This document shows, in pieces, positions 6,307-63,450 of a stretch of DNA of 64,000 nt. Location: the sequence record MK327931.1; one strand, 5' to 3'. Below the pieces are notes generated by a model. It was given only the letters and a program-made list of their open reading frames with translations, was not told where the DNA came from and did not search any database. Numbering within the stretch: position 1 is the first letter of the stretch; every line of letters begins with the position of its first letter. Position numbers and translations under genes: made by a program.

Positions 6307-6735
6307 TTAGTTAATAATAAAGGTAATTTCAGGATTCATTTCCGAAACTGCATTGCGTTTACTTCTATCCCATAGTATTCTGTTATTATACAAAGAAGAA
6401 TCACATACTACAAGTAAGCAATTTCTTAATCTACTTACAGTACTTTGATTATTTAAATCAGTTTCTGAAATAAAAAATACATTTTCAGGAACTACTAAAG
6501 GAATAGATTTATCAAAAAACAAAACTACAATAGGTCTTGTTGTATGAACTGATTTAACGAAATCCAAAATACTATTATAAAAATTAGTTTCTTTAGTAAT
6601 TACTGACGGATCTTTAATTCTTTTCAAATATTGCTGTGGTAATTGATGTTCGTCTTTTATCTGAAACTCAAAATATTCTTTGAATAACATTTGTGTTAAT
6701 TCGGATTTATCGGATATTTTCGTTGTGTTACTCAT
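6307..6735 (-). CDS. Hypothetical protein
   Basis: First minus-strand ORF following element copy 1. Confidence 0.65.
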   Translation of the reverse strand: MSNTTKISDKSELTQMLFKEYFEFQIKDEHQLPQQYLKRIKDPSVITKETNFYNSILDFVKSVHTTRPIVVLFFDKSIPLVVPENVFFISETDLNNQSTVSRLRNCLLVVCDSSLYNNRILWDRSKRNAVSEMNPEITFIIN

Positions 6736-6821
6736 TCACTTCGTTCTCTCGTAACTCAAGAAGTCACTGCGTTTACTTCGTAAACTAGTTCCTTCTGAAA
6801 ATGATAATGTACTTTAAAAAC

Positions 6822-7351
6822 TTGACGGGATTTGTTGAGGACTATTACATCCCCCCGCAGGGGAATGAAGGTAATAAAAAAGAGACAATTAAGTCTCTCT
6901 TGACGATGATGGCATCGGATATTATCGAATTGCGAATTTCTCAAATTTTGGACGGATCTTTCTTGTACCAAAATTTAGAGAGCGAAAGCGGGTTGCTCGG
7001 TTTCTCTCTATCGCAGTCATATGCAACGGTCGCTGGTCTTTTCATCAACAGCACTCAGTACTAACTCTATTCGATCAAAGTAGTACTTGTTCTCAAATTT
7101 TGGACGCAACTTTCTTGTAAAAATTGCGTCCGCTATTCTTGAACTCCCTTAGCAAATCTGGTAAGGTGCGAACCTTATACATCTATCTAGGAACTCTCTG
7201 TATGCTTATCGGAGTTCTTTATACAGCCGTGTCGCCGTGATTCGTGGTCTTACATCGTGTTTGTTTGAATGCCAGTACTCTAACAGGTTTCTTCTGCTGT
7301 TCGCTACAACGGTAAAGCTCATCTATCCTTTACATTTTCAAGAGAAGTAGG
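6822..7351. ncRNA. Putative large structured non-coding element, copy 1 (~530 nt)
   Basis: Intergenic; collinear identical blocks with 62883-63349; many hairpins; compensatory changes; no conserved reading frame. Confidence 0.7.
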
Positions 7352-7396
7352 TTCTCAGTGTCCATTTTTCAATGTCCGTTGTCATTTTCTATATAC

Positions 7397-7424
7397 ATTA
7401 TATCATTGGAACATATAATGTCCC
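7397..7424 (-). promoter_or_regulatory. GGGACA-N16-TATAAT promoter (TGA extended -10) upstream of element copy 1
   Basis: Same pattern at 32614, 41850, 57336, 63423. Confidence 0.55.
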
Positions 7425-9580: not shown

Positions 9581-10000
9581 TTACAACATTTTTTGAATAT
9601 GTTCTACTAGTTCATACAGCTTCGTTTCATTATTCTCGAACTTTTCATCAACTTCAACATTGAATTTTTCTTCTAGTTCCATGACCATTTCAATCCAATC
9701 AAGCCAATCAAAATTGAATTTTTCTTCGACTTCCAATTTAGTAAGATTGAAGTTCGCTGATACCTCATTCTCTGATGTATCACAGTAACGAGTAGTGATG
9801 AATTTGACAATTTCTTTTTCAACATCGTTTAATTCACGAGTTTGATATTCGGGCTGAAGATACCACCATTCTCCCTTATTAATAGATTCCAATTCTTGTT
9901 TGATTTCATGCATTACTTTATAACGGTCAGTACTTTTATCAATAGAATTTACTTCTTGGTTCAATACATGTAGTGCATTTTTAATACGTTCATTTAACAT
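9581..10000 (-). CDS. Acyl-carrier-protein-like protein lacking the Ppant serine
   Basis: FDWLDWIEMVMELEEKFNVEV aligns with ACP helix II (ADSLDTVELVMALEEEF) with S replaced by W. Confidence 0.7.
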   Translation of the reverse strand: MLNERIKNALHVLNQEVNSIDKSTDRYKVMHEIKQELESINKGEWWYLQPEYQTRELNDVEKEIVKFITTRYCDTSENEVSANFNLTKLEVEEKFNFDWLDWIEMVMELEEKFNVEVDEKFENNETKLYELVEHIQKML

Positions 10001-10013
10001 TTTATCACCTTAT

Positions 10014-10041
10014 AAAAAAAGAGAACTCCATATGAAGTTCT
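10014..10041 (-). terminator. Rho-independent terminator
   Basis: GAGAACT-loop-AGTTCTC + T7 on minus strand. Confidence 0.7.
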
Positions 10042-10044
10042 CTG

Positions 10045-10073
10045 ATTATACATAATTACTTTTTCTATGTCAA
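10045..10073 (-). promoter_or_regulatory. Consensus sigma70 promoter
   Basis: Perfect TTGACA-N17-TATAAT. Confidence 0.85.
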
Positions 10074-10074
10074 G

Positions 10075-12864
10075 TTATAAATCACGGAAACGATTTGGTG
10101 TGTTTAAGCGGTACATTGAGTATAATCCCAATCCACGCATAATCTCACCTGCCCAGAAACCAAAAAACATACCATTATCAGTACCTTCTCTAACTGCTGG
10201 ACTCCATGAACCATTCATTGGAGAACCTGGACTTACAATAACATAGTTCTTTTGAAGTTCGAGAACTAAGTTATCAGCGAGTGTTGTTAGACCTTCTATT
10301 TTACATCCAGCCAATCCAGCAGCACAAGCCCCAGCTAACCACAACCCACACATATGACCTGTAAAGTCCCAATCTGGACCTTCAACTGTGCCATCTTTAT
10401 TGAAGATTGTTGGTGAACGACCATCATTATCTTTTTGAAATTGAATTAAAAAGTGAATCCAATTCTCACAAAATTCAACAAGATCTGCTGGTGGTTCAAT
10501 TCCTCTCTCTGCGAGTTCTTGCCATGCTCTGGCAGCCCCAAAGAACGCACGTGGTTCATACCCACTCCATGCTTGATCACCCCAATGTAGCATAGTAAAT
10601 GTATCTGGTTCACCATATTTTAAGTTATCCCAGCGGTTCCAAACATATGCTTGTGCACATGGACCAACAGTACCGAATTGTTGAGTAAACCATGTTTGAG
10701 AATCTTTCATAAAGCTTAACATGTTGCCTAAACGTGTGTTATCAACTGGTTGGTCTTTAAAACAATATATCACAGGATATTGATAACCTGGATACGGTAA
10801 ACCACGCCATCCTGAATACTGGTTCGCATACGGGTCAGTGATGTTAGAAAATGGTATTGTTCCTGGTGTGTAATGCAATGAGTTTAACAAATAATCCTTG
10901 ATTACACAATCCCCTAACTGTGCAGTATATGGTGATTCACCTGCAATTGTTATTGAAAATGTCATAGTATAGTCATCACCGTCAGCATCCGTGTATAATT
11001 CTGGAATGTCATTAATACAATACCAATCAATTATTGCAGCAACACCATCTACTGGGGTTGTATCAGGTAAAATAGTAATATCTTCTAGTTCACTATAAAC
11101 TGGTGCATCTGGTCTTGGGTCAGAACTTGGATGATTTGGCTGATACCCAGATAAACGTAATGTATCGGAACTTAGTGTGATTGTAGTCCATTCCCCGTGT
11201 GTTGCAGGAATCATCCACCACCATCTCCAACCATTATCATCTACAATTCTTATATTGTAATCATCTTCATATGAACGATAGGTAAAAGATTTAACTTCAG
11301 ACTTATTTGTTGCTAATAGCCAAAATCCAATAACAGCACCATCATCTTCACCACAAACTAACTGATTAATGGTATCGCGGCGTGTAACTAATATATCAGT
11401 ACTATATATCATTTCGGACGTAGCTGCACCATAAGGAACAACAATTCTACTATCAGCAATTATATAAGGGGAACCATCTGCTTTCTTTTCTCTAACAAAT
11501 GCACTTAAAGGTGTTAATGAATGTGTGATATTTTGGTCTTTACTTTCCGGTAAGCCACAACGATAACGAACAACATCATGGTCATTTTTTGTTTTTGACA
11601 ATTCCAGTACTGGTTTAAATGATAACGGCTTACCATCATCACATACACCACCATAGTCTACAAGTAATTTAGAATCAGCATTGACCCTGAACCAAATAGC
11701 TTGTTGTTCCATAGTACTTTGTGCACTTTGGTCTTGCCTGATAGTAATATATCCTAGAGAATTTCTACCAAACTTAGCAATAGCATCACTAGGATAAAAA
11801 TATTCATAGGAAATACCATCAGTGAATGGTGTGGTTACAATTGTACTTTGTCTGAAAAATTTATCTCTGGAGTCAATATCACCATAAGCATAACACGTTA
11901 GTAGTGAACATTTCCAACCCAAATAATGTTTTCTTTCTTTTGTTATTTTATATAACAAATAAGAAGCATCACTAAACCATAATTCTGCATCTGATGCGTT
12001 ATCAGCAAATTCCAAATCAATTGGAACATGAAGAGGGCGGTTGTGTTGCATTTCATTTCGTTGAATTATCACACCACCATATTCTACTGGTTGACGATTT
12101 GCAAAATTTAATTTATATACACCATTAATTGTTGTATTCTTTAATTGAACAGTTCCTTTTTCCGATTCGTCAAAACCTTCTGCTAAAATATTACCATCCC
12201 AGTCGATTTTTCTACCCATGAAATCGATAATCCAGTCAACATCATATTGTTCACCTGGTGTATCCCAATCAACACTACCATCTGGTAATAATGCTTTTAC
12301 TGACGCATTTATTTGGTTCCATGCTAAAGCACCTTTGAATGCAAATGTTACTTTATCCAAGAACTGACCATAATAAGGTGCACCATGTGGTATTTTACAT
12401 TGTCCATTTGTAAATGTAAATTCTACACCCTTGAAACCACCATGTGTAGGCCATCCATCATCAGCTAAAGGCCAGTTAGCCAATATAGGTTCTTTGGCAT
12501 TAACTATCCAGTTACATTGTAGTGGTGTAGGTGGATCTGGTAATTCACGTCCAGCATAAAAGTACTGATGATATGCGTCCCAATACCACTTTGCCTTATC
12601 TAAAAACATTGGATCATTTGTTGCCAGATACGCATAAATGTATCCTAAAATTAATAGACTTTGACCTTCTGTTGTCCCGTCACCGTTTGGTTGACCTTCC
12701 ATTGCAGAATAGTTAATAAAATGACGGTTGTTCGCCAAAACACCCTGATTATTCACCACATAATGTTGTACTGTTGGATCTATAGTATCACCAGTATTTC
12801 TTTCAATAAACTTATGATGCCCATAAAGAAGTTGTACTATATTATCAATATTATTGTTTAACAT
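10075..12864 (-). CDS. Large tail-associated protein with putative six-hairpin glycosidase-like fold
   Basis: 929 aa, W/Y/D-rich; DGTTEGQSLLILGY resembles the GH8-type TSEGQ motif; adjacent to tail-fibre-like genes. Confidence 0.55.
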   Translation of the reverse strand: MLNNNIDNIVQLLYGHHKFIERNTGDTIDPTVQHYVVNNQGVLANNRHFINYSAMEGQPNGDGTTEGQSLLILGYIYAYLATNDPMFLDKAKWYWDAYHQYFYAGRELPDPPTPLQCNWIVNAKEPILANWPLADDGWPTHGGFKGVEFTFTNGQCKIPHGAPYYGQFLDKVTFAFKGALAWNQINASVKALLPDGSVDWDTPGEQYDVDWIIDFMGRKIDWDGNILAEGFDESEKGTVQLKNTTINGVYKLNFANRQPVEYGGVIIQRNEMQHNRPLHVPIDLEFADNASDAELWFSDASYLLYKITKERKHYLGWKCSLLTCYAYGDIDSRDKFFRQSTIVTTPFTDGISYEYFYPSDAIAKFGRNSLGYITIRQDQSAQSTMEQQAIWFRVNADSKLLVDYGGVCDDGKPLSFKPVLELSKTKNDHDVVRYRCGLPESKDQNITHSLTPLSAFVREKKADGSPYIIADSRIVVPYGAATSEMIYSTDILVTRRDTINQLVCGEDDGAVIGFWLLATNKSEVKSFTYRSYEDDYNIRIVDDNGWRWWWMIPATHGEWTTITLSSDTLRLSGYQPNHPSSDPRPDAPVYSELEDITILPDTTPVDGVAAIIDWYCINDIPELYTDADGDDYTMTFSITIAGESPYTAQLGDCVIKDYLLNSLHYTPGTIPFSNITDPYANQYSGWRGLPYPGYQYPVIYCFKDQPVDNTRLGNMLSFMKDSQTWFTQQFGTVGPCAQAYVWNRWDNLKYGEPDTFTMLHWGDQAWSGYEPRAFFGAARAWQELAERGIEPPADLVEFCENWIHFLIQFQKDNDGRSPTIFNKDGTVEGPDWDFTGHMCGLWLAGACAAGLAGCKIEGLTTLADNLVLELQKNYVIVSPGSPMNGSWSPAVREGTDNGMFFGFWAGEIMRGLGLYSMYRLNTPNRFRDL

Positions 12865-12865
12865 G

Positions 12866-13493
12866 TCATACTCCTGCTCTAATCAATGCACCGTACCATG
12901 TAACTCCTTTATCGTATGTTTCTAATGAAATAATATCTTTTTCACCAATTTCATAAGAAAGAACAACTGGTCTATTATATGACCATTTAACATTAGATCC
13001 CCAATTAACGAGGTTAGACCCTGTTTGCTGAGTTAATAGGATAGTAATTGAATAAACTTCAGTAGGAGCAGCACCAATAGCAATAGTGGTATTTCTGTCA
13101 GATAAATTAATATTAAAAACTGTATTACCTGATAGGGGATTAATTAAAATATTATTAGAACTCAATACATTATATAATTTGTTACTAGCACTATCATACA
13201 ATGTTACCCATTCTGTTTCATGATTCTCATTAGTAGCTTTAGCTTTTATTTTTACATTATTTTCGGAAGAAGTCATTCCAGTCCAGCCAGAAATAATAAA
13301 AGAACTGTTTTTATTTGTTCCAAATGATGCAATTACTGAATCACTAAGAGAACTATCTTCACCGTCAATAGATCCGAGTACTGACAATGTTAAAACCATC
13401 ATTTTTAATGTCTACACCAGTTGCACCTGAAAAATTATTTTGAAATTTAATAACTCCGGTAGTGTGGATATCTGTGAAAATTTGTTGTGCCAT
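12866..13493 (-). pseudogene. Tail-fibre-associated protein split by a +1 frameshift (ORFs 13365-13565 and 12866-13402)
   Basis: Removing one base at about 13376 joins MAQQIFTD...DGFNIVST to GSIDGEDSSL...; span 628 nt = 3n+1. May be a sequencing error. Confidence 0.6.
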
Positions 13494-13570
13494 ACTTAAT
13501 CCTTGCGTTAATTTATATTGAGTATTTATTGAGTATAATGGCATTTTTAGTACCATTATACTCATGTATG

Positions 13571-14803
13571 TTACTTATACCATTGCATTTCTCTGATATC
13601 AATGATAATTTTTGATGCTAATTTAATGTTTGGTTTTTTGGGAAGTACTGATTTCTTATATAGAACATCACGAATGTATTGTACTTTATCATCGAAATAT
13701 TCTAATACTTCTTCATACTTCCACTTACCATTACGAATATCCATCAACATTTGTGCATCAGGTCGTTTAACTTGAATAATTCCACTCTGTAAAGCTTCTT
13801 CTGCACTATTCAAAAGTCTAATTGTGTGCATAGCATGTTTACAATCGTATCCGTGTTGTGATTCTAAAACAGCACGTTTGGCATTACGATTTTCTTTCCA
13901 TTTATGATAACTTTTCCTATTCTCACTATTCTCCTGATATTCTTTTTCGTTAAATTTTACAATTAGTTCTGGTTTGGTTTTCAACTCTTCAGTACTACGT
14001 TCTTTTGAAAAATAACGCAATGAACCATCATGGTTAATAGTGCTTTCATTAGGATTCTTAACAATCGCAAAAATGTTTTCTCCGTAATGAATTAGTTCAT
14101 AACCATTATTAAAATTCAATAAATTGAAATCACGATCAAGAATTTTTTCAGTAGTGTAGTTATGCACTAATCTTACGAAATGATATTGCTTTAATGGATT
14201 TTTCGAAACTAACTGCAATGATGTATCACGCATATATTTTTCAAAATCAATCTTTTTAGCATTAAATGGATGTAAGTTGGATGTATCTAAACGTTCAACA
14301 AGATACTGTGGGAATGAATCATACATCCACGCAAGAACCTCATCGACAGGGTGTTCTTCTAAAATCTCATTTAATCGTTTTTCAGCAATACGCTCTTTAT
14401 CCATCCAACCGTGATGATTTGTCATACGCTTAATCTGATTATATGCATATCCAGTGTATGAAAATGCAATCTTGGAACTAAGAAGTTTTTGGTTAAATGA
14501 ACGAAGATAGTCATAAATTTCAGTACTTTCCACAATGTGTTCAGGTTCAACCCAAAGTGATTCAAGAATATTAGGGTTAGCTTCAGTGTATAATTTTAAA
14601 TACTGATTCAACTCATAGAATTTAGTATCTTCTTCGCTTTTGTCAGCTACCTCTTTGACCTTATAGAAGGGTGTAAGAATAAATTCTTTATTAGCAAGAA
14701 AAATACCACGATAATCAGTATCACTTTCCGGTGTACTGGTTCCGTAGGCTTGTGACCCAGCCAAGTGTTTCACTATTGTTTGTTCAATATATTGGTTATT
14801 CAT
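13571..14803 (-). CDS. Nucleotidyltransferase (Pol-beta superfamily, phage/RlaP-like)
   Basis: GSQAYGTSTPESDTDYRG, NPNILESLW, GYDCKHAMHTIRLL. Confidence 0.85.
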   Translation of the reverse strand: MNNQYIEQTIVKHLAGSQAYGTSTPESDTDYRGIFLANKEFILTPFYKVKEVADKSEEDTKFYELNQYLKLYTEANPNILESLWVEPEHIVESTEIYDYLRSFNQKLLSSKIAFSYTGYAYNQIKRMTNHHGWMDKERIAEKRLNEILEEHPVDEVLAWMYDSFPQYLVERLDTSNLHPFNAKKIDFEKYMRDTSLQLVSKNPLKQYHFVRLVHNYTTEKILDRDFNLLNFNNGYELIHYGENIFAIVKNPNESTINHDGSLRYFSKERSTEELKTKPELIVKFNEKEYQENSENRKSYHKWKENRNAKRAVLESQHGYDCKHAMHTIRLLNSAEEALQSGIIQVKRPDAQMLMDIRNGKWKYEEVLEYFDDKVQYIRDVLYKKSVLPKKPNIKLASKIIIDIREMQWYK

Positions 14804-15201
14804 AGATAAATTGTTAACTCCTTTAAGAAACCATTATAATAACGATTAAAGTCATGTTCTAATGTTTTATAATCATCAAAACTAAAACCTAAATTGATAA
14901 TTGTATCTTCTTGAAAGAAAGTTTCTTCATTCATACATTCAATAGGTTCGTAATTAATTCCACCTTTGAAAACTTTTGTAAAAAACATTCCATCATTATT
15001 AATTTCAACATACATAAAATTATTTTCTGGGTCACGAGGACAGACGATATTCAGTGAACTATTTCCACTTGTATTGTACTCATAAGAAATTATATCAAAA
15101 GAATCAATACCATAACACTTAGATTTTTCTTTATCGCCAAATACTTTTCTATCTGTACTCATATTGCGTATAGTGCTATAGATATCATCAACTGTAGTCA
15201 T
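14800..15201 (-). CDS. Hypothetical protein
   Basis: C-terminal MNEETFFQ motif shared with 54656, 55342, 62223. Confidence 0.65.
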   Translation of the reverse strand: MTTVDDIYSTIRNMSTDRKVFGDKEKSKCYGIDSFDIISYEYNTSGNSSLNIVCPRDPENNFMYVEINNDGMFFTKVFKGGINYEPIECMNEETFFQEDTIINLGFSFDDYKTLEHDFNRYYNGFLKELTIYL

Positions 15202-15203
15202 AG

Positions 15204-15713
15204 TTAACCACCATACTTTGACTTGTATGTTTCAAGTGATAAAGATATACGATTTTGCTTTTTAATTCTTTCATCAATATCCTTTGAATTCTTCACACTT
15301 CGGTATACGTCAGCTAATAAATTATAATCTTCTTTATTTGAGCTATGCTGTGTCCAACCTATGTCTGTTTTAATACGAACATTTGCTTTATTTGACGAGT
15401 AAAAGAAACTGAAACCATTTGACCCATCAAAAATATCAAAAGTATCTACCCAATCACCATAAGGAAAACTCATCGGGACTGACTCGTGGTCGATTGTGAT
15501 ATCCGATAAATTTTTTGAACAGTACTTCGCAAAGTGATAAACAATTGGATCACATTTAGATAATTCATATTTGTATTCAATGATAGTTTTTCTATTAGCA
15601 TCATTGATAGCATATTCTTTCATCAATGGGCTTTTTTTGATGATAAGAGTCCACAGAAACGATTCTAATCCGGTTTCATCAACTTTTTGTTTCTTTTTGA
15701 AAAATGAAATCAT
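15204..15713 (-). CDS. Hypothetical protein, tandem paralog 1
   Basis: KSPLMKEY..NDANRKTIIEYKYELSK. Confidence 0.7.
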   Translation of the reverse strand: MISFFKKKQKVDETGLESFLWTLIIKKSPLMKEYAINDANRKTIIEYKYELSKCDPIVYHFAKYCSKNLSDITIDHESVPMSFPYGDWVDTFDIFDGSNGFSFFYSSNKANVRIKTDIGWTQHSSNKEDYNLLADVYRSVKNSKDIDERIKKQNRISLSLETYKSKYGG

Positions 15714-16231
15714 TTATATAAACCCTTAATTTTCTGTCTATTATGTATATCATTTTGCTGGATTTTCAATTTAGTAAGGTTGTTTCTTACACCTTCAACT
15801 CCACGCATTATTTGTAACATAATTAGTGATTCGTCATATGTTAGTACATTGCTATTATTATCGATATATACTTTCACTCCACTTTCAAGATAATCATTTT
15901 CTTTGGAGTTAAAGTTTCTAATAGCAAACTTAACGCCATTTGATGTATCACTGAAAACATATCGTTCCGCACCGTAGAATGTTTTTCCACGAAATAAACC
16001 GCCGTCTTCCCACTTCCAACGACTAGATTCATAATCATTAACGTAATCAATGATTAAAGAAAGTAAAGGGTGTTTGCTCAATTTATATTTTGCATCTAAC
16101 AGGATACGTCTATCATTATCTGTGGTGATAATATCCTTTAGTGAGTAGCTTTTAGATATAATTTTAAAGATAATTTCATGCCAAATTAAAGTACTGTTTT
16201 GTTTTCCAACTGATCCAAAAAACATATCCAT
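15710..16231 (-). CDS. Hypothetical protein, tandem paralog 2
   Basis: KSYSLKDI..TDNDRRILLDAKYKLSK. Confidence 0.7.
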   Translation of the reverse strand: MDMFFGSVGKQNSTLIWHEIIFKIISKSYSLKDIITTDNDRRILLDAKYKLSKHPLLSLIIDYVNDYESSRWKWEDGGLFRGKTFYGAERYVFSDTSNGVKFAIRNFNSKENDYLESGVKVYIDNNSNVLTYDESLIMLQIMRGVEGVRNNLTKLKIQQNDIHNRQKIKGLYK

Positions 16232-16237
16232 TCCTCA

Positions 16238-16804
16238 TTAGTATAAATCAGTAATGTCTTTGTATGCATTAATCTGTTTTTGTTGTAATGAAAGTTCATT
16301 GAGTTTAGTTACCATTTTATCTACACCAACACGTGTATAGAAAATAATAAATGAATCTAAATTGCCTAGAGTAATTCTTGAACTGAAATTTGAAAGTTTT
16401 CTTGCATAAACATAAATTTCTTCTTCACTTGGTAAACGTTTCTCAATCGGCCAGCTTTCCACACCATTCGGCTCATAATCGATTTCAAATTCAACTCCCA
16501 TCACTGTGTCTTGAATGAGATCCGTATATGAACCACCGTAAAAATACTCTCTTGGTTTGGCTCTCCAACGAGGACTAAATGGGTCAGATGCGTATTCTTT
16601 TACAAATTTGTAAAAGGACATTTTACTGAGCATATACTTCATCTCAATTAGTGCTTTGCGGTCATCATCAGTTTTAAACTCTGCTTTGAGCGATGGACTT
16701 TTACACAGTAACTTAACTAAATTGATGTACATCTTTAATGTACGTTGTTCTTTCATTTCTTTGATTTTGTGACGTTTTGGTGGCGGTAATAAAGATTTGA
16801 CCAT
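16238..16804 (-). CDS. Hypothetical protein, tandem paralog 3
   Basis: KSPSLKAE..TDDDRKALIEMKYMLSK. Confidence 0.7.
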   Translation of the reverse strand: MVKSLLPPPKRHKIKEMKEQRTLKMYINLVKLLCKSPSLKAEFKTDDDRKALIEMKYMLSKMSFYKFVKEYASDPFSPRWRAKPREYFYGGSYTDLIQDTVMGVEFEIDYEPNGVESWPIEKRLPSEEEIYVYARKLSNFSSRITLGNLDSFIIFYTRVGVDKMVTKLNELSLQQKQINAYKDITDLY

Positions 16805-16826
16805 AATTTCCTCCTATTTTTATTCA

Positions 16827-16855
16827 ATTATACACATAAAAGAAAAGCCCGTCAA
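16827..16855 (-). promoter_or_regulatory. sigma70-like promoter overlapping a terminator hairpin
   Basis: TTGACG-N17-TATAAT; the -35 lies inside the AAAGCTCGTC/GACGGGCTTT hairpin. Confidence 0.75.
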
Positions 16856-16871
16856 TAGACGAGCTTTAAAT

Positions 16872-19691
16872 TTATTTCCAACGTGTACCTGGACCTGATG
16901 GTACACCAGTACTGGCAGGTATCGCTGAACCACGTTTCGTTGTACTTGGACGATATGTCAAAAAACGAGTTACTTTTTCTGTATCAATTGAAGTTATTCC
17001 TGAAGTTCCAGTAACTATCTTACCAATGTAAGTGCTAGTTAAAGATTCATCAATTGTTTCAGTACTAATAACATATGACGCTTTCTTAGTATTCCTGTTC
17101 ATTTGTATATACAAATAGAACGTAGTATTAGCTGGGTTACTTTTTACAGTACTTAAATCAACACTTTGTATAGGTAGTCTGTCGAAAATTCCACCTAAAA
17201 ACACCGGAACTTCACGTGTAAAGTACACTGAGAATCCTTGTGCAACGTCTTGTGATACTACCACAATCTTTTCTTTAACGCTACCATTTCCACTAATTAA
17301 ACCATCCATTTCAGCAGATGTTGTACCAAAAACGCTGAATACAGATTTGGTTTGATAGTCAGAATCTTGAAAATTGTAATATCCAAAACCAACACCAGGA
17401 ATAACACCATGTTGATATGCTGCACCAAGTTGGATGTAACTAGATGATAAAAAACGATTTGATGTTATGACACCATCTACTGTTTTAGCTATCATCATCT
17501 TAAATTGTGCATTACCTGGTTGTGAAAATTGATGAACAGCATCAACACCAATGTAACCAAATCCTGAATATTTTGCAACTGTTAGACCAGTACAACGTTT
17601 CATATATGCTTCAGTAATAATTCCTGTAACAGAACTAAGTGTCTCATATCTAGTACTTACCAATGTAGCTGAAGTTATGTTAGATCCAGATAATACAACA
17701 TCAACTTCGGCATAGATTGCATAACCTTGGTTATTGTTAAGATTATATGCTGAAACTACTGCAATGGATTTAGAAAAAGTATTATCAGGTACATAATATA
17801 ATACAATTTGTCCAGATAGTGTACCAACAATGCCAGAGTTTCCTAGATTAGCAAAAATATCTTGTTTTAATGATTCTAATACCGTTGGTTCTATTGTATA
17901 TGTTTCATCAAATTCTAAAGTATCTGGGTTTAATAATCCACCACTTGTTTTATATACACCTTCAATGAATGATGTTCCATAACATCTAACACTACCATCG
18001 GTATCAACAAGAGAAATCATAGCAGTGTATGTAAAATCATCACCTATTTGTTTACGATTAGATTGTGGTGCAAAACCATTTAATGTAGTATTATTTTGAA
18101 CTGAGTTATATTGATATGTTGGTTGTGAGCCTATTTCAGAAAAAACAGTATTATTATAATTATATGTTACATCATCATACGTACCAGAACATGCTAATAA
18201 TATTTTTCTATTATCGATGAAACGTACACCTAATAGGTTTGCACCAACAGCACTACCAAAAACTGGTAAAACGTTTGCATTTATAACGTTACTTGCGGAT
18301 CTAGTACTAGCAACCCATGAATCAAACGGTGTACCACTAACCTTATATCGTTGTAGACCATAAAATTCAGTTGAACTCCATCTAAATTTAGATGCAAATA
18401 CTAAACCATCTTTGGTTTGACATAAACCACCTGCGTTTCCTAATACACCAGCAGCAGTTGTCCCAGTAAAGTTGACCATATTGATTTCAAATGGGTTAGA
18501 AACTTGAAATCCATTATCATATGAAACTGTAGCAGGAGCACGAGCAGAACCATCTAGTGACATAGATTTTGAGTTTATATTATAAACAAAACTGATACCA
18601 GTACCATACACTGTTGAAATATATAAAGGTGTAACCATTCTATGGGTTGGGTATAAAGTTACACGTATTTTGGATAAATCAGTACTAACGTTTGCTTGTA
18701 TATTAAAGTCTGTATAATCCGAAAATTCTACACGTGAGACTGGTGATGTAACTTCGAATAATGAATCCGAGCTAGTACCAACACTATATAATCTATCAAA
18801 CACTCTTATGTTATTAGATGCAGAATAACTTGTATTTCGAACAGTTTGCCCTGATAATCCAGTAACTTTTGTTAATGATGCCATTGAGCTTGCTTTCACA
18901 TCACTTAGCTCTACTGTATAAATTGAAAGTGCTAATCCTAAATTAGAAACACTTTTATCTTTACACCAAATATATACTTTTGTTCCAACAATATGAGTAT
19001 ATATAGGCATATCATTACCAAAAGAAGTACTTGGTACTTTAGCATGAATATGTGATACTTCGTTGAATGTACCATTAGTTATAGTAAAAATATAATTATC
19101 TTCTGTACTTAAACATCCAAGCATTTCATAACCATTAGAGCCAATAAAATACTTAATATTCTCTGTACTACTCATAATTGAAGGTTTATACATTGAATTG
19201 GTTGAAATAACACTTTCTTGTGAAATCATGGTTATATTTCTGATTTCTCGTATAAATGAATAATAAAAACCTTTAGTACTACCATTGGTTCCGCTACGCA
19301 GAACAACGGCGGTTCCATCATCTTCAATAATTGTTGGCTGAACTACTTGGTCACTTGACATAGGTGTAGCACCTTCATACGACCCACTTACGTTTAATGG
19401 CAAGTAATCCATTTCTCCTACACGTGATATAGGCAACATATCTAAAATACTTTGAACTTCTGAACGCTTATATATTGGATATTGAACAATTCCAGTATTG
19501 GCATTCGGTGAGGTTCCATTAAAAGTACGCATAGCGTACCTTTGTCCAATTGCCAAGTTCCCAAGGATCTCGGCACTTCCTATAATTCGTTTTGATGACA
19601 TCTTTCTTTTCCTTAATTTACCAACCAATTGTACCAGTTTCTGATGGTTTTCCAGTACTGACTGGGAATGAAGAACCTTTTTGTGTAACAC
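16872..19691 (-). CDS. Virion structural/tail-associated protein (likely start MSSKRII near 19601)
   Basis: S/T/N/G-rich; paralogous N- and C-termini with 20217-22913. Confidence 0.6.
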   Translation of the reverse strand: MLHKKVLHSQSVLENHQKLVQLVGKLRKRKMSSKRIIGSAEILGNLAIGQRYAMRTFNGTSPNANTGIVQYPIYKRSEVQSILDMLPISRVGEMDYLPLNVSGSYEGATPMSSDQVVQPTIIEDDGTAVVLRSGTNGSTKGFYYSFIREIRNITMISQESVISTNSMYKPSIMSSTENIKYFIGSNGYEMLGCLSTEDNYIFTITNGTFNEVSHIHAKVPSTSFGNDMPIYTHIVGTKVYIWCKDKSVSNLGLALSIYTVELSDVKASSMASLTKVTGLSGQTVRNTSYSASNNIRVFDRLYSVGTSSDSLFEVTSPVSRVEFSDYTDFNIQANVSTDLSKIRVTLYPTHRMVTPLYISTVYGTGISFVYNINSKSMSLDGSARAPATVSYDNGFQVSNPFEINMVNFTGTTAAGVLGNAGGLCQTKDGLVFASKFRWSSTEFYGLQRYKVSGTPFDSWVASTRSASNVINANVLPVFGSAVGANLLGVRFIDNRKILLACSGTYDDVTYNYNNTVFSEIGSQPTYQYNSVQNNTTLNGFAPQSNRKQIGDDFTYTAMISLVDTDGSVRCYGTSFIEGVYKTSGGLLNPDTLEFDETYTIEPTVLESLKQDIFANLGNSGIVGTLSGQIVLYYVPDNTFSKSIAVVSAYNLNNNQGYAIYAEVDVVLSGSNITSATLVSTRYETLSSVTGIITEAYMKRCTGLTVAKYSGFGYIGVDAVHQFSQPGNAQFKMMIAKTVDGVITSNRFLSSSYIQLGAAYQHGVIPGVGFGYYNFQDSDYQTKSVFSVFGTTSAEMDGLISGNGSVKEKIVVVSQDVAQGFSVYFTREVPVFLGGIFDRLPIQSVDLSTVKSNPANTTFYLYIQMNRNTKKASYVISTETIDESLTSTYIGKIVTGTSGITSIDTEKVTRFLTYRPSTTKRGSAIPASTGVPSGPGTRWK

Positions 19692-20205
19692 TAGGTCTAT
19701 ATGTACTAAATCTGGATACTTTATTAATGTTTATATTTGTAATACCACTTGTACCAACGGTCAGTGTTCCAATAAACATTATAATTTCAGATTCTTGTAT
19801 TTGTGTTGGTGATATTTTATAAATTGGTTCACCGAGAACTAACGTTGCATATACATATTGTGTTTGTGTTCCAGATGAAACAGTTGAAGCAAAAATAGAA
19901 ACTGCTGGAAATTTATAAAGATAACCACCAATAAATGATGGTATCTGTCTATTAAATGTAAGACTATAGCCTGATGAAGTAATATTTAGACTAGCGTCAT
20001 CATACAATTCTCCGTATTGTGTAAGTGGTAATCCATTGACAATAAAGTTAACTTCATCTTTGGTAATAGAGGGGAATGTACATTCCCCATTTGAATTTGT
20101 TGGGTAATAAGTCATATTATTACCTAATACACCAAGTCCAGTACTTTTACCCTGTACTGTAACTTGTTGCATTGCCTTAAGGTCTGCTCTTATTTTAAAT
20201 GCCAT
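19618..20205 (-). CDS. Short structural protein sharing the C-terminal domain of its neighbours
   Basis: KVSRFSTYRPS...GSSFPVSTGKPSETGTIGW. Confidence 0.6.
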   Translation of the reverse strand: MAFKIRADLKAMQQVTVQGKSTGLGVLGNNMTYYPTNSNGECTFPSITKDEVNFIVNGLPLTQYGELYDDASLNITSSGYSLTFNRQIPSFIGGYLYKFPAVSIFASTVSSGTQTQYVYATLVLGEPIYKISPTQIQESEIIMFIGTLTVGTSGITNININKVSRFSTYRPSVTQKGSSFPVSTGKPSETGTIGW

Positions 20206-20216
20206 TATGTAATCCT

Positions 20217-22913
20217 TTACCAGTTTATGGTTCCTGTTTGTGATGGTAGACCGTAGCTAACTGGGAACGATGAACCTGCTGATTCAAGTGAAGCACCAAA
20301 TATATCTAAACGTGAACGTTTTTGTATATTAATAGTTTCGATTTGAATTGCGTTAGTTTGAATAGTACCTATCCAAAAAATATTATATGCAGTTGTTCCT
20401 GTTTCGGAAATAACATCAGTAGTTATGTAGTAGTTTGCCAACCCTTGTTCTAATTTAACATATACATAAAATGTTGTATTTGCTGGATTAGATTTTATAG
20501 TTCTCAAATCAATATTTGAAACTGGTAGTGTAAAAGACTTACCTGATAGTATAACTGGTGTTTCCTCTGTAAAATAAACAATAAACCCTTGAGCAACGTC
20601 TTGTGATACTACGTTAATTGGGCTACCTTGTGGAGTCCAGTTATTATAGTCGGCTATCGTTGTTCCATATTTTTGAAATGACATTTTATTTGTATAATCC
20701 AGTGGATCAAAAATACCAAATCCAATACCAGGCAACGCAGTGGGTTGTCTTCCTTGTTCATAACTGGCATGAGAACCAGTAATAACAAAACTTGTAAATT
20801 GTGCAGTTGATTTAGTTACATATGCTCTAAATTGATGAGTTGCTGTATTTCCTATTGTTGGATGTGTTAATGGGTCAGAACCACCAATGAAGTAGAATGA
20901 ACCACCATCATAAATTGTTAACCCAACAGAAGAAGATGCAATCGAACCATTACCATTAGGTGTAAAGTTTTCACCATATGTATTTTCTAGTACTAAACGC
21001 TTAAAGGTAATAGATGTTATATTTCCAACTCTAGTATTAACGTTAACTTCAGCAATTCTAATATAGTTTTTATAGTCATTTGTTATAGTACTCAACATAA
21101 CAAAAGCCGGAATGTCAGTTTGTTGTGGAACAAATAATGTCATATCACGATAAGCTTGTGAAGATAAGTTCCAGTCACTTAGAACTTTAGCATATTCTGT
21201 ATTTCTAAAGTTATCTAGAACTGATTGTGTAACACTAATAACACCAGTACCATTTAAGTTTTTATCATATGAAAATGATTGTGAATAACGTTGACCAACC
21301 ATAAAAATACCGCCATTAGTTGTTACAGTTGAACCTGAAATACTACTAATGAAAATTCTATTATTGGCATTATCATCTACATAACCACGTTCAGTTGTAG
21401 GTTCATAACCTTGTATGGTTCCTAAAGATAATGATTTAAATGTAAAATTAGGAGTACTTTTATGAACTGCATATGATGGTCTAAACCCACCACTACCAGA
21501 CGCACGTGAATATTGTTTAGTACTATTATCTGGTAACAACTCCACACCATTAATAAATGAACCAACTGCTGAACCAAAGGATGGTCTAACAACTCCACCT
21601 TTAAAATCAGTTGATTGTACTGCACGAACGTTAATCATACTATAAACAATTTGTATAGGAAACTTTGCTTTTTGCATAAGTAATGGTTCTGCTAAGTTTG
21701 GACACACAGTACAAAAAGCTTCACCTGAACTTAAGTAAAAATAAGAACTATAAATGTTTCTTGCATTAGCATGATTATATAATGGATCATTATTTAAAAC
21801 GTTACCTGTAGGCACTAATGCAGAACCAGTATTGGTTATAACCAATGGTGCTTGATATGAACCTATGTCATTCCCAGCGTCTAGGGTGCATTGTTTAGTA
21901 CTCATATTAAATGCAAAGCTGTAGCTATGTTGTGGTCGGGCATTATATGTCGCCATTGTAAACCATGCATCACCATTCATTCTAAAACGAAAGTTCTGTG
22001 TTCCTGGTTGCTGTGCAACATACAAATCAATGGATGTCATATAAATCCCAATACCACGTAGGTTTTGTGGTACATACACATAAGGCTTATCTGCTATATT
22101 AGTTGAAGTTACTTGATTAGTAATAACCATGTTATTCTGTGCAGAATAAGTTGTATTATAGAATGTTTTTGTAGTCCATCCTGTAATACGAGTTGCCGTA
22201 TATGTTCCATTGCTAATATTATATACAACTCGGACAACAACTAACTGTAGTTGGTTATTTTCATTAAGAACACTAAAGACATAGATTGAACCATCTTCAG
22301 CCATCATTGCAAATTCTATACCACCTTCAGGGCAAATATCTGCTTGATTTACAAAAAAACCAGTATGTAATTTATCATCTAATGTACCATTAGTAATAGA
22401 AATAAACAATCCATTAGTACTGTTAGAAGTGTCTACATATCTACCGAGTAAAATATTTGGATCAGTATTGTATAAGCCAATTGCGACGCGATTTGAACCG
22501 AAAAAACCAGGCTTGTATTGACGACTGGTGTTAATTGTACGGCTCATGTCATCAACTGATAATGCGTTAGCCAAATATGAATAATATAATCCCTCAACAC
22601 TACCGTTTGTACCACTACGTAATAATACGAGTGTACCATCGTTTTCTAATAAAATTTTATTTCTACGTTGGGACTGGTTTTCAGATGCACCATTGAAATC
22701 ACCAGATACACCAGCAGGAAGATAGTTTTGTGACCCATAATGGGAAATTGGCATCATACTGACGATATCTAGTACTTCATCTCTTGAATAAGTATCTAGC
22801 TCCATATTGCCATTAGCATCAAATACTTGATCATTGATACCTTGTATTGTTCTTTTACCATTAACTGTCACATTATGTGTGACATCCAAGCCACCATATA
22901 TTTTCTTTGACAT
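20217..22913 (-). CDS. Virion structural/tail-associated protein, paralog of 16872
   Basis: Shared MxPIS...YLP..VSG, LRSGTNGS and VVSQDVAQGF motifs. Confidence 0.6.
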   Translation of the reverse strand: MSKKIYGGLDVTHNVTVNGKRTIQGINDQVFDANGNMELDTYSRDEVLDIVSMMPISHYGSQNYLPAGVSGDFNGASENQSQRRNKILLENDGTLVLLRSGTNGSVEGLYYSYLANALSVDDMSRTINTSRQYKPGFFGSNRVAIGLYNTDPNILLGRYVDTSNSTNGLFISITNGTLDDKLHTGFFVNQADICPEGGIEFAMMAEDGSIYVFSVLNENNQLQLVVVRVVYNISNGTYTATRITGWTTKTFYNTTYSAQNNMVITNQVTSTNIADKPYVYVPQNLRGIGIYMTSIDLYVAQQPGTQNFRFRMNGDAWFTMATYNARPQHSYSFAFNMSTKQCTLDAGNDIGSYQAPLVITNTGSALVPTGNVLNNDPLYNHANARNIYSSYFYLSSGEAFCTVCPNLAEPLLMQKAKFPIQIVYSMINVRAVQSTDFKGGVVRPSFGSAVGSFINGVELLPDNSTKQYSRASGSGGFRPSYAVHKSTPNFTFKSLSLGTIQGYEPTTERGYVDDNANNRIFISSISGSTVTTNGGIFMVGQRYSQSFSYDKNLNGTGVISVTQSVLDNFRNTEYAKVLSDWNLSSQAYRDMTLFVPQQTDIPAFVMLSTITNDYKNYIRIAEVNVNTRVGNITSITFKRLVLENTYGENFTPNGNGSIASSSVGLTIYDGGSFYFIGGSDPLTHPTIGNTATHQFRAYVTKSTAQFTSFVITGSHASYEQGRQPTALPGIGFGIFDPLDYTNKMSFQKYGTTIADYNNWTPQGSPINVVSQDVAQGFIVYFTEETPVILSGKSFTLPVSNIDLRTIKSNPANTTFYVYVKLEQGLANYYITTDVISETGTTAYNIFWIGTIQTNAIQIETINIQKRSRLDIFGASLESAGSSFPVSYGLPSQTGTINW

Positions 22914-62765: not shown

Positions 62766-62882
62766 CATTATTCCTATGGAAACATCAATGAATATACGTG
62801 ACGTTGATTGCATCAACATCAGTAGAATTATCATGCTACGCATGTCTAATTCTACACAAGTACTATTTTCTTTTAATTAATA

Positions 62883-63349
62883 TTGACGGGGTTTGCTTGA
62901 GCATATTTCATCCCCCCGCAGGGGAAAGAACAAAAAAATTTGACGCTGGTGGCCTTCACATAGTTCATATCACGAATTCTCTTACGAGACGAAAGCGGGT
63001 TGCTCTGTTTCTCTCTATCGCGGTTCTTGTAGCAACGGTCGTCGGTCTTAAACATCCCGACACATAATACAAATACCATATGACCAGTACTTGTATTTGA
63101 TTTCACAAAATTTGGACGCAACTATATTGTATAATTCCGACCGCATATTTCTTATGAAATCTCCCTTAGATAATTGGTAAGGTGCGATCCTTATATGTCT
63201 ATCGAGGAACTCTCTTTATCCTATTGGAGTTCTTTATACAGCCGCATTGCCGTGAGTGGTTCAAACTATGCCATCATCTAACGGGTTTCATCTGCTGTTC
63301 GTACTGAAAGGACTACTCATCTACCCTCTACATTTTCGAGTGGATTAGG
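62883..63349. ncRNA. Putative large structured non-coding element, copy 2 (~467 nt)
   Basis: Collinear homology with 6822-7351 and compensatory changes. Confidence 0.7.
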
Positions 63350-63385: not shown

Positions 63386-63420
63386 AAAAAAAGGTGACTA
63401 ACATATTATGTTGTCACCTT
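63386..63420 (-). terminator. Rho-independent terminator
   Basis: AAGGTGAC-AACATAATATGTTA-GTCACCTT + T-run. Confidence 0.7.
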
Positions 63421-63422
63421 AT

Positions 63423-63450
63423 ATTATATCATTAACTTATCATTTGTCTC
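63423..63450 (-). promoter_or_regulatory. GAGACA-N16-TATAAT promoter upstream of element copy 2
   Basis: Same TGA-TATAAT class as 7397. Confidence 0.55.

Follow-up and report, generated by a model that had tools for sequence, protein, structure and literature searches.

Rak2-like jumbo phages carry 3-5 spaced copies per genome of an undescribed, heavily folded predicted RNA gene of about 0.5 kb, each copy with its own promoter, and single copies of the same element are found in small, defence-carrying islands of enterobacterial chromosomes, suggesting a self-contained module that phage-dependent elements can borrow. We analyzed a 64,000-nt stretch of record MK327931.1 (hereafter, the window), which contains two copies of the element, both on the minus strand. 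An earlier note had described these as two collinear, apparently intergenic stretches and proposed that they represent a novel structured non-coding element.

A family of structured elements in Rak2-like jumbo phages

The observation made in the earlier note is confirmed. All seven identical sequence blocks occur exactly where the note placed them in both copies, and the two stretches are collinear, with 75% mean column identity over about 690 aligned columns. The similarity is far beyond chance, since nhmmer searches recovered the element at full length (E values of 1e-69 to 1e-131) in every related genome sampled, including members of Asteriusvirus, Mimasvirus, Eneladusvirus and Alcyoneusvirus and uncultured relatives. 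The number of copies is, however, larger than the two that were originally noticed: there are 4 in phage 121Q, the nearest genome compared, of which the window holds two, and 3-5 in other genera. The conserved unit is also longer than the 6822-7351 interval, running from a promoter at 7397-7424 to about position 6740. In each of 16 genomes or records, all copies lie on one strand, whatever the orientation of the neighboring genes, and their positions are syntenic across genera. The spacing is fairly even; in CBB, the copies lie at 32, 95, 175, 258 and 337 kb of a 356-kb unique genome, and by our calculation a smallest gap that large has a probability of about 0.005 for 5 random points. The paralogues remain distinct across genera rather than being homogenized or lost.

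The element is conserved at the level of RNA structure rather than protein. In 73 non-identical copies, 96 base pairs are 94.5% canonical and 54 of them covary, against 35-44% canonical and 14-18 covarying pairs in slid controls, and 39 of the 96 pairs lie above the 99.9% quantile of all column pairs. Consensus folding of the alignment yielded 40 of 64 pairs with double compensatory changes. By contrast, the alignment contains frame-shifting indels and no conserved ORF, in agreement with the earlier note, although several depositors annotate 1-4 small ORFs in the region, which differ between records. A putative leader peptide at GGGGGGAUG was rejected, because the frames differ between copies and copy 1 reads AUG-UAA. 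The compensatory changes that the note reported in the terminal hairpin (7323-7350) are real, whereas the long-range helix TGATGGC/GCCAGTA that it proposed to close a large domain is not supported: in the family alignment its positions are 0-61% canonical, with one exception, and the 7255-7280 partner region is an insertion present in only 23 of the 73 copies.

The element did not match any known RNA family. Searches of the 64-kb window against Rfam 15 (including RNase P, tmRNA, group I and II introns, 6S, ROOL, GOLLD, OLE, HEARO and raiA) returned no hits at the gathering score, and at E<=10 the two copies gave only noise, the best hit being 22 bits against a 60-bit cut-off and most hits lying in the flanks. 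ARAGORN found no tRNA or tmRNA in the window. Resemblances to the tmRNA 5' end and to RNase P blocks fall on opposite strands, are not supported by ARAGORN or Rfam, and are considered here as chance. The copies lie between unrelated, complete genes, in either orientation relative to them, which does not fit a group I or group II intron interrupting a gene whose exons rejoin into one reading frame. No description of the element was found in full-text literature searches, which did not extend to the supplementary csRNA catalogue of PMC10690425.

Strand and promoter

The earlier note left the strand open, leaning towards the plus strand because of GNRA loops and G-U pairs. The evidence favors the minus strand. 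All 53 copies checked have a conserved extended -10 promoter reading into the element, including the matching promoters at 7397 and 63423 that the note had pointed out, and G-U pairs outnumber A-C pairs 215 to 70 in the covarying helices. One hairpin (7191-7217) shows the opposite wobble bias (10 G-U against 26 A-C), for which we have no explanation. Folding energies cannot decide the question, as RNAalifold values are equal on the two strands (-121 against -123). A plus-strand promoter-like sequence, TTGACG-N17-TTACAT at 6824-6850, lies inside the conserved 3' block of the minus-strand RNA and in most genera the box reads CTGACG; we read it as part of the RNA.

The promoter of copy 1 (7397-7424, minus strand) consists of a -35-like GGGACA (7424-7419) and an extended -10 TGATATAAT (7405-7397), with the RNA inferred to start near 7390. 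The promoter of copy 2 (63423-63450, minus strand) consists of GAGACA (63450-63445) and TGATATAAT (63431-63423). The same motif class lies 30-90 nt before all 53 copies checked, about 20 such promoters lie on one strand of 121Q, and the class is the same as the TGAAACG/TATA promoter class reported for CBB (PMC5259590). In copy 2, a hairpin formed by AAGGUGAC and GUCACCUU and followed by U7 (63386-63420) is likely the terminator of the upstream gene and overlaps the predicted start of the RNA; analogous hairpins occur in many copies.

Predicted architecture of the RNA

The conserved body of copy 1 reads from 7350 to 6821 on the minus strand. It begins with a 5' hairpin, H1 (7323-7350), with five covarying pairs, followed by the invariant GAUGAG box (7323-7318). 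The next domain (7223-7300) is closed by helix 7300-7296/7227-7223 and contains an inner helix (7286-7283/7238-7235) and a variable hairpin, with support from covariation; its internal-loop bases 7232-7230 pair with 7181-7179 to form a second pseudoknot, and the two window copies differ compensatorily at this contact (ACA/UGU versus AUG/CAU). All seven pairs of hairpin H4 (7191-7217) covary, and its loop bases 7205-7203 may pair with 7154-7152, just before the invariant UAAGGGAG block (7151-7144), although this contact covaries more weakly. An optional module occupies site B (7093-7137; roughly GUACAAnAnAGnUnCGUCCAAAAUUU in the RNA sense), inside a hairpin closed by the covarying helix 7144-7141/7092-7089, and copy 1 carries a second copy of the module at site A (6945-6975), an internal repeat that was also apparent in BLAST comparisons. 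The pseudoknot arm A/A' (7058-7086) pairs 7086-7079 with 7066-7058, and its loop, 7075-7069, pairs with 6930-6924; both helices are among the strongest covarying pairs, with 52 G-U against 5 A-C in A/A'. The central domain (6924-7057), which is the most conserved and includes helices H8-H12 and the blocks CGACCGUUGC and GAGAGAAACnGAGCAACCCGCUU, was used to build a model, R1, which recovered a third RaK2 copy missed by BLAST.

The 3' part of copy 1 contains an intrinsic-terminator-like hairpin, AGAGAC/GUCUCU, with a U-run (6876-6898), just after the CAUCGUCA box (6908-6901). Such a hairpin, for which termination is inferred from sequence alone, is present in three paralogue classes only, whereas a U-rich tract is present in all. 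It is followed by a G-rich 3' hairpin (6845-6870; UUCAUUCCCC ... GGGGGAUGAA), in which 87 G-U and 0 A-C were counted among 364 pair cells and the 5' arm varies U/C opposite invariant G, and by the 3' box ACAAAUCCCGUCAAG (6821-6835). This second CGUCA box is invariant apart from U/C opposite G (160 G-C against 52 G-U) and may pair with GAUGAG and GGG of UAAGGGAG, although the pairing cannot be proven by covariation. Further downstream (6736-6820), hairpins with ACGnAGUG-type loops lead to the start of ORF 6307-6735; a similar module follows the element in most phage copies and in the two island copies read, and in many loci it contains a second promoter. The body of copy 2 (62882-63348, minus strand) is a compact form that lacks module site A and the terminator hairpin but retains the U-tract (62932-62938), the G-rich hairpin (62906-62931) and the pseudoknot (63096-63067 with 63084-63078/62970-62964).

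Copies in enterobacterial genomic islands

Full-length, structure-preserving copies of the element sit singly in low-GC genomic islands of about 10-18 kb in Serratia, Enterobacter, Silvania, Buttiauxella and E. coli. The islands encode a recombinase, mostly a large serine but in some cases a tyrosine recombinase, a CI-like repressor and defence cargo (DarT, RmrA and DUF4238), but no recognizable replication initiator. With 121Q, they share only this element and its promoter type, and tblastn found no shared protein. The island copies keep 85-94% of the pairs, with compensatory changes, and their promoter type matches the local phage genus, being GGGATG-N16-TGATATAAT in E. coli, as in Asteriusvirus, and TGAAAC/TGAAAT in Serratia and Enterobacter, as in Mimasvirus and Eneladusvirus. 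The islands thus conform to the sequence-level definition of a phage satellite, that is, an integrated island with a recombinase, no structural genes and a sequence link to a helper phage, although mobilization by a helper remains a hypothesis. The arrangement differs between islands. No island backbone proteins were found near the element in IMG/VR loci, and the 15.7-kb viral contig nearest to the island copies is a jumbo-phage fragment, not an island.

Possible functions of the element

The interpretation proposed in the earlier note is partly supported. The element is a large, conserved, multi-helix non-coding RNA element without an Rfam match, and of the three alternatives offered, a multicopy ornate ncRNA and a mobile non-coding element each capture part of the truth, as the element is an independent transcription unit that also occurs in bacterial islands, whereas a long regulatory leader fits some loci but not the endonuclease VII locus. 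What the sequences demonstrate is a gene-like unit on the minus strand of the window, in which a conserved extended -10 promoter is followed by a highly structured, pseudoknotted RNA of about 470-580 nt, a U-rich tract or terminator-like hairpin, a G-rich hairpin and a conserved 3' box, kept as 3-5 diverged, syntenic and co-directional paralogues by the phages and as single copies by the islands; expression of the RNA and any role for it, by contrast, are inferred. Contigs from four wastewater RNA libraries are scattered over genes and element alike at low depth (2-13) and are uninformative in this respect.

Our best guess, which remains tentative, is that the unit works in cis as an origin or primer RNA. 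In this view, transcription from the phage-type promoter would yield a folded RNA whose 3' part (U-tract and G-run hairpin) stays on or returns to the template, where the T4-like replisome of the phage would start, giving several co-directional start sites along a 350-kb genome. Islands that have no replication genes of their own would carry one copy to be amplified, and then packaged, when the matching jumbo phage infects. This possibility is supported by the positional logic of the copies, by the occurrence of the unit in islands, and by its independence from neighboring genes: at the baseplate-hub/endonuclease VII locus, the unit points against its neighbors and is followed by a bidirectional terminator, the genes downstream of the two window copies share no function, and many loci have a second promoter after the element. 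There are precedents for such a mechanism. ColE1 RNA II is a folded pre-primer of about 550 nt, whereas T4 oriF and oriG consist of a middle promoter plus a persistent R-loop, and plasmids carrying them replicate and are transduced after T4 infection. However, the model is not backed by replication data, and GC skew shows no inflection at the elements, although skew here simply follows gene direction. Known primer or origin RNAs are not known to need a fold this elaborate, with at least two or three pseudoknots and many invariant unpaired bases, a complexity that points rather to a protein or RNA partner or to catalysis. Furthermore, the internal terminator-like hairpin lies upstream of the most conserved 3' block, which the origin model does not require, and for copy 1, and probably copy 2, we saw no separate promoter for the downstream gene, so that the RNA may also serve as a leader.

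Comparison with the two precedents reveals both parallels and differences. Like the element, ColE1-type RNA II has a sigma-70-type promoter, a folded RNA of about 500-550 nt whose structure matters and a G-run near the 3' part, needs no element-encoded protein and can be used by small replicons without replication genes. However, there is no sequence or Rfam relationship, a blastn search with an island copy against 72,556 plasmids gave no match (with sensitivity limited to about 65-70% identity), and the pseudoknots and invariant loops far exceed those of RNA II. No counterpart of the antisense RNA I was found; promoter scans around the two window copies, which were not aimed at a conserved antisense promoter, listed unremarkable plus-strand sigma-70-like matches near the 5' end of the RNA. 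With T4 oriF/oriG, the parallels are a T4-like replisome and several dispersed, directional sites that each begin with a promoter of the phage's own class, and the amplification and transduction of T4 origin plasmids on infection is the logic we propose for the islands. T4 origins, however, are short and are not known to have a conserved RNA fold, whereas here a 0.5-kb covarying structure is the conserved feature and no DNA-unwinding element has been identified.

Nearly as likely, though also no more than a possibility, is a trans-acting ornate non-coding RNA, namely a scaffold of an RNA-protein complex, a self-assembling RNA or a ribozyme, which would be made in quantity from 3-5 gene copies early or midway through infection, with the island copies being decoys or giving the island the same benefit. 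The complex fold with its pseudoknots and many invariant unpaired blocks, the promoter of each unit, the terminator-like 3' hairpin in several classes and the one stand-alone locus speak for this model, and the optional module is grafted at either of two helices, as with the peripheral elements of large ribozymes. By contrast, nothing in this model explains the conserved positions, the even spacing, or why a recombinase/repressor island backbone would keep one copy, the paralogues stay distinct across genera rather than being homogenized or lost, and no partner gene is linked to the element; a discrete transcript is likewise only predicted. Like ROOL, GOLLD, OLE and HEARO/omega RNA, the element falls in this size class, is multi-domain with pseudoknots, has unknown biochemistry and is associated with phages. 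It differs in that no Rfam model matches it, there are no tRNA genes in the window and no linked IscB/TnpB-type gene in the flanks examined, and these classes are not known to occur in 3-5 syntenic paralogues per genome. PA5oct, a distant relative of the Rak2-like phages, has RNA-seq-supported putative lncRNAs of 236-619 nt (ncRNA001-004; PMC7318152), but nhmmer found nothing on the region holding ncRNA001/002, and a whole-genome scan with R1 gave only a 20-bit hit that lacks the core and lies at none of the four annotated loci.

A giant cis-regulatory leader or attenuator appears unlikely. In such a model, the folded core would decide whether RNA polymerase stops at the U-tract or terminator hairpin or reads on into the downstream genes, by a riboswitch-like logic or by processive antitermination as with put or nut. 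In most loci, co-directional genes follow within about 90-170 nt, a terminator-like hairpin or U-tract sits between the core and the 3' block, and in one paralogue class the first CGUCAG box forms its 5' arm; the invariant GAUGAG could pair alternatively with either CGUCA box, but, the bases being invariant, covariation cannot test this. However, the endonuclease VII locus has no downstream gene, and in the Enterobacter and Serratia islands the RNA runs convergently into other genes. Downstream genes are functionally unrelated (DUF5856/Dps-like, Dam methyltransferase, cytidylyltransferase and unknowns), so that no conserved association with a downstream gene or pathway was found, many loci carry a second promoter after the element, the terminator hairpin is absent from compact copies such as copy 2, and at 500 nt the element is far larger than known leaders. 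Processive antitermination RNAs (HK022 put, lambda nut and EAR) are likewise cis-acting, placed just after a promoter and present in more than one copy per phage genome, but the known ones are 20-120 nt and always head operons, whereas this element stands alone at one locus.

Also unlikely is an island-centered role, in which the island copy, driven by a phage-type promoter, would be an infection sensor that switches the island on, for example through antisense transcription into the repressor gene, or a decoy that titrates a phage factor as a defence, the function in the phage being something else. The matching promoter types, the defence cargo and the convergence of the RNA with the CI-like repressor gene in Enterobacter chinensis speak for this view, but a sensor would need only the promoter, whereas island copies preserve the structure, the arrangement differs between islands, and the model says nothing about the phage copies. 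Finally, a DNA-level element without functional RNA (protein-binding array, cruciform or packaging site) or a cluster of small protein-coding genes is very unlikely: although pairing is mostly strict Watson-Crick, small ORFs are annotated and the repeated CTGACG boxes could be binding sites, covarying long-range helices and pseudoknots are not expected of duplex DNA, the wobble asymmetry points to a single transcribed strand, every copy checked has a promoter reading into it, and indels shift the reading frames.

Implications for jumbo phages and their candidate satellites

Large RNAs with this much covariation are rare, and nearly all of those solved so far turned out to do something fundamental. 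The element is present in 3-5 copies in every sampled member of a widespread group of therapeutic-candidate jumbo phages, including PBECO4, 121Q, RaK2, GAP32 and CBB, where it is either unannotated or mis-annotated as small hypothetical proteins, and the annotation of these genomes can be corrected now. Its presence in chromosomal defence islands that otherwise share nothing with 121Q provides a concrete, testable connection between jumbo phages and candidate satellites in Enterobacterales, and marks a sequence that could be used to find more such islands. The jumbo-phage satellites I23/I44/I55 of Pseudomonas (PMC12595487; commentary PMC12772148) are also defence-carrying islands without transfer or replication genes that are moved by a jumbo phage, but they are 20-70 kb in size and use tyrosine integrases next to tmRNA, and no shared RNA element is reported for them, whereas the islands described here, whose mobilization is hypothetical, are smaller, mostly use large serine recombinases and share a structured RNA with the phage. 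If the element is a trans-acting RNA, it is a new ornate RNA class suitable for structural study. If it is an origin RNA, it would explain how these genomes start replication and how islands hitchhike. It is possible, if doubtful on present evidence, that a folded RNA defines the replication start sites of a whole clade of 350-kb T4-like jumbo phages and that the same module is the ticket by which minimal, defence-carrying islands of Enterobacterales get themselves replicated and spread by those phages, which would make an RNA-specified origin the common currency between helper and satellite.

Distribution of the element in jumbo phages

The window belongs to an Asteriusvirus jumbo phage and is 100% identical over the element to PBECO4 and several others, the nearest genome used for comparison being that of 121Q. 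Most genes in the window run on the minus strand. Every sequence block that the earlier note had listed as shared between two distant stretches was confirmed in position in both of them, and the 2 stretches align collinearly at 75% column identity. The observation thus held, although the element is not limited to 2 copies. The 121Q genome carries 4, at 90.5, 193, 248, and 327 kb, of which the window holds the 248-kb and 193-kb copies. HNH homing-endonuclease genes (121Q positions 246,019-246,630 and 91,320-92,108) lie within about 1-1.5 kb of 2 of these 4 copies, which may be coincidence or a sign of local gene flux.

A blastn search against 50,697 phage records revealed the element in 72 records, with 256-270 places and up to 5 per record. 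All are Rak2-like jumbo phages of Escherichia, Salmonella, Klebsiella, Erwinia, Yersinia, Pectobacterium, Cronobacter, and Serratia, plus 2 records labelled Xanthomonas. The latter, OP292654 (XbC2) and OR258281 (XaC1), are labelled as infecting Xanthomonas vesicatoria, yet carry Mimasvirus-type copies with the same layout as in CBB and GAP32, which infect Enterobacterales, so that the host label or the host range deserves attention. Profile searches with nhmmer showed that essentially all copies are full length, about 470-580 nt, and a covariance model of the core found 3 copies in RaK2, one of which had been missed by BLAST. In IMG/VR, true hits occur only in contigs that are, or are fragments of, genomes of about 350-370 kb. 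In GenBank records of related phages (e.g., PQ390715, OR699181-8, NC_042116, MK773491, and PQ464590), 1 to 4 small "hypothetical protein" CDSs, some with annotated ribosome-binding sites, are called inside the element on either strand. Given the frame-shifting indels and the RNA covariation, these are probably over-annotations.

Covariation supports a pseudoknotted RNA

We aligned 73 non-identical copies from 16 genomes or records (effective number 44, mean identity about 65%). The consensus structure has 96 pairs, which are 94.5% canonical, and 54 pairs show 2 or more Watson-Crick types. Sliding the 3' partner by 1-3 columns lowers these values to 35-44% canonical and 14-18 covarying pairs, and mean APC-corrected mutual information falls from 0.42 to 0.03-0.07. 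Of the 96 pairs, 39 exceed the 99.9% quantile of all column pairs. The structure rests on MAFFT alignments and our own covariation statistics rather than on R-scape, and because the sequences are phylogenetically related, the counts overstate the number of independent events. Independently, consensus folding of 40 representatives predicts 64 pairs, 40 of them with double compensatory changes.

The core contains a true pseudoknot, in which the hairpin 7086-7079/7066-7058 has a loop (7075-7069) that pairs with 6930-6924, both helices being among the strongest covarying signals. Further covarying contacts join 7232-7230 with 7181-7179 and the loop of hairpin 7191-7217 with 7154-7152, and a helix closing an optional module also covaries. 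The 2 window copies themselves differ compensatorily in several of these helices. By contrast, helices built from invariant bases (the GAUGAG, CGUCA, and GGGAG contacts) are conjecture. The optional module, of about 30 nt (plus-strand AAATTTTGGACG[GC]A[TA]CT.T.TTGTA), is conserved in sequence but sits inside different hairpins at 2 alternative insertion points. It is present at both in copy 1 (6945-6975 and 7093-7137) and at only one in copy 2 (63103-63150), and could be a tertiary-contact element or a protein site.

Evidence favours the minus strand

Folding energy does not discriminate between the strands (-121 against -123 kcal/mol), whereas 2 other lines of evidence do. First, in all 53 copies examined, an extended -10 promoter on the window's minus strand reads into the element from 30-90 nt away, including at the locus where the neighbouring genes point the other way. 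This promoter (7397-7424 and 63423-63450 in the window) reads TGnTATAAT, preceded at about 16 nt by GGGACA/GAGACA/GGGATG in the Escherichia and Salmonella phages and in Erwinia phage Hallingskeid, and by TGAAAC/TGGAAC in Mimasvirus and Eneladusvirus. It is the "divergent RpoD-like" class of CBB (PMC5259590). 121Q has about 20 such promoters, with G(G/A)GACA or GGGATG, then N16, then TGnTATAAT, on one strand and a single one on the other. The difference in the upstream hexamer between phage genera hints that a phage-encoded factor recognises it.

Second, in covarying helices G-U on the minus sense outnumbers A-C 215 to 70. The 3' G-rich hairpin has 87 G-U and no A-C, and pseudoknot arm A/A' has 52 against 5. 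One strongly covarying hairpin (7191-7217) shows the opposite bias, with 10 G-U against 26 A-C on the minus sense and an invariant plus-sense G-T next to it, an exception for which we have no explanation.

Predicted architecture of the RNA

In RNA sense, copy 1 begins with the promoter (7424-7397) and a predicted start near 7390, followed by a 5' hairpin (7350-7323), the invariant GAUGAG box (7323-7318), a first domain (7300-7223), and 2 hairpins (7217-7191 and 7177-7162). The invariant UAAGGGAG (7151-7144) precedes site B of the optional module (7137-7093) and the pseudoknotted central domain (7086-6924). These are followed by the CAUCGUCA box (6908-6901), a terminator-like hairpin plus U-run (6898-6876), the G-rich hairpin (6870-6845), and the second CGUCA box (6835-6821). 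Hairpins with ACGnAGUG-type loops then extend down to the start codon at 6735. These hairpins (6736-6820) represent a second conserved module, with equivalent regions following most copies. In many loci there is also a sigma-70-like promoter whose 17-nt spacer is itself a hairpin (e.g., TTGACT-N17-TAAAAT).

Copy 2 is a compact version, which lacks the terminator hairpin but keeps the U-tract. Its promoter overlaps the likely terminator of the upstream gene, from which we infer that only transcripts started at the promoter should escape that terminator.

Genomic context in the phages

Within each of the 16 genomes or records, all copies lie on one strand, and their positions are syntenic across genera, for example, beside the sigma-factor gene, and between the baseplate-hub operon and endonuclease VII. 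At the endonuclease VII locus, the RNA is convergent with its neighbours, and in the Mimasvirus-, Eneladusvirus-, and Hallingskeid-type genomes a bidirectional terminator follows about 150 nt after the element, so that there the RNA stands alone. Elsewhere a gene follows, and many loci have a second promoter in between. The genes downstream of the 2 window copies have unrelated functions.

The copies are rather evenly spaced. In CBB, GAP32, Kaldavass, fHe-Yen9-04, XbC2, 7t3, and 3 further genomes examined (G002, G003, and G005), 5 copies per genome lie at intervals of roughly 50-86 kb, more even than random placement would give. In CBB, they lie at 32, 95, 175, 258, and 337 kb of a 356-kb unique genome, which by our estimate has a probability of about 0.005 for random points, although the genomes are not independent of one another. 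121Q has only 4 copies, with wider gaps.

Copies in bacterial genomic islands

Unexpectedly, a two-block pattern derived from the core hit 8 bacterial contigs, all of which hold full-length copies scoring 255-310 bits, with 1 copy in each of the 5 genomes scanned. The copies keep 85-94% of the 96 pairs, with 3-14 double compensatory changes relative to the nearest phage copy. The fold is therefore under selection in bacteria too. One full-length copy, on the 2.8-kb GTDB contig DPOH01000171.1 (locus L258) binned as Clostridium sp. UBA10317, is 96-98% identical to 3 of the enterobacterial island copies, and the contig is probably mis-binned. The element is rare in bacteria, being found in 1 of 151 sampled species of the family.

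In the complete chromosome of Serratia fonticola (NZ_CP183218.1, about 4,226,700-4,244,700) and in Enterobacter chinensis (contig 5, about 106,700-117,100), the copies sit in low-GC islands (30-40% against 50-59%) of about 18 kb and 10 kb, respectively. In most of the 8 loci, the element is flanked by a CI-like S24 repressor gene, a large serine recombinase gene at the island edge, or both. The defence and other cargo includes a UvrD-like helicase with DarT and an ADP-ribosylglycohydrolase, RmrA, DUF4238, HNH, Hcp/DUF4225, and ParB-like proteins. A tblastn search found no island protein in 121Q; only the RNA is shared. Two of 5,426 complete E. coli genomes have a copy, and the one examined (NZ_AP027515.1, about 9,900-20,600 of locus L304) lies in a 10.7-kb island next to ffs, with a tyrosine-integrase remnant, and is full length, scoring 391 bits.

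The promoter type follows the host's phage genus: the E. coli island has GGGATG-N16-TGATATAAT, the Asteriusvirus type, whereas the Serratia and Enterobacter islands have TGAAAC/TGAAAT, the Mimasvirus and Eneladusvirus type. We read these low-GC islands of 10-18 kb (bacterial loci L252-L259 and L298-L301, and L304 of E. coli), which carry a large serine (or tyrosine) recombinase, a CI-like repressor, and defence cargo and each hold one copy of the phage RNA, as candidate satellites of Rak2-like phages, their mobility being inferred from sequence alone. Satellites of jumbo phages have only just been described, in Pseudomonas, but these are of a different type and no RNA element is mentioned (PMC12595487, PMC12772148).

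Possible functions and relation to known RNAs

The interpretation put forward in the earlier note, which had proposed a large structured non-coding RNA of unresolved strand, was supported in part. Our analysis establishes a conserved, independently promoted, elaborately folded RNA unit, kept at fixed, spaced, co-directional places in the phages and borrowed by islands that otherwise share nothing with the phage tested, whereas transcription, the RNA ends, and the function are inferred. Tentatively, we favour a cis-acting origin or primer RNA, which best unites the positional features, the stand-alone locus, and the presence of the unit in islands with no recognisable replication initiator, with ColE1 RNA II and the T4 oriF/oriG R-loop origins as precedents. 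However, neither GC skew nor a plasmid search lent anything to this model, and contigs from public RNA data were uninformative. A trans-acting ornate RNA is possible and only slightly less likely, as it best explains the tertiary complexity, which the origin model does not. A giant leader or attenuator appears unlikely, and an island-side sensor or decoy slightly more so. An element acting only as DNA, or coding for protein, is very unlikely.

No Rfam 15 family matches the element. It is not an intron, because it sits between complete genes in either orientation, and it is unrelated to the PA5oct ncRNAs. None of the papers searched mentions it, although this did not extend to the 10,006 unnamed candidates of PMC10690425. 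We therefore consider the element to represent a new RNA class, the mechanism of which may turn out to resemble a known one, namely RNA-primed origins.
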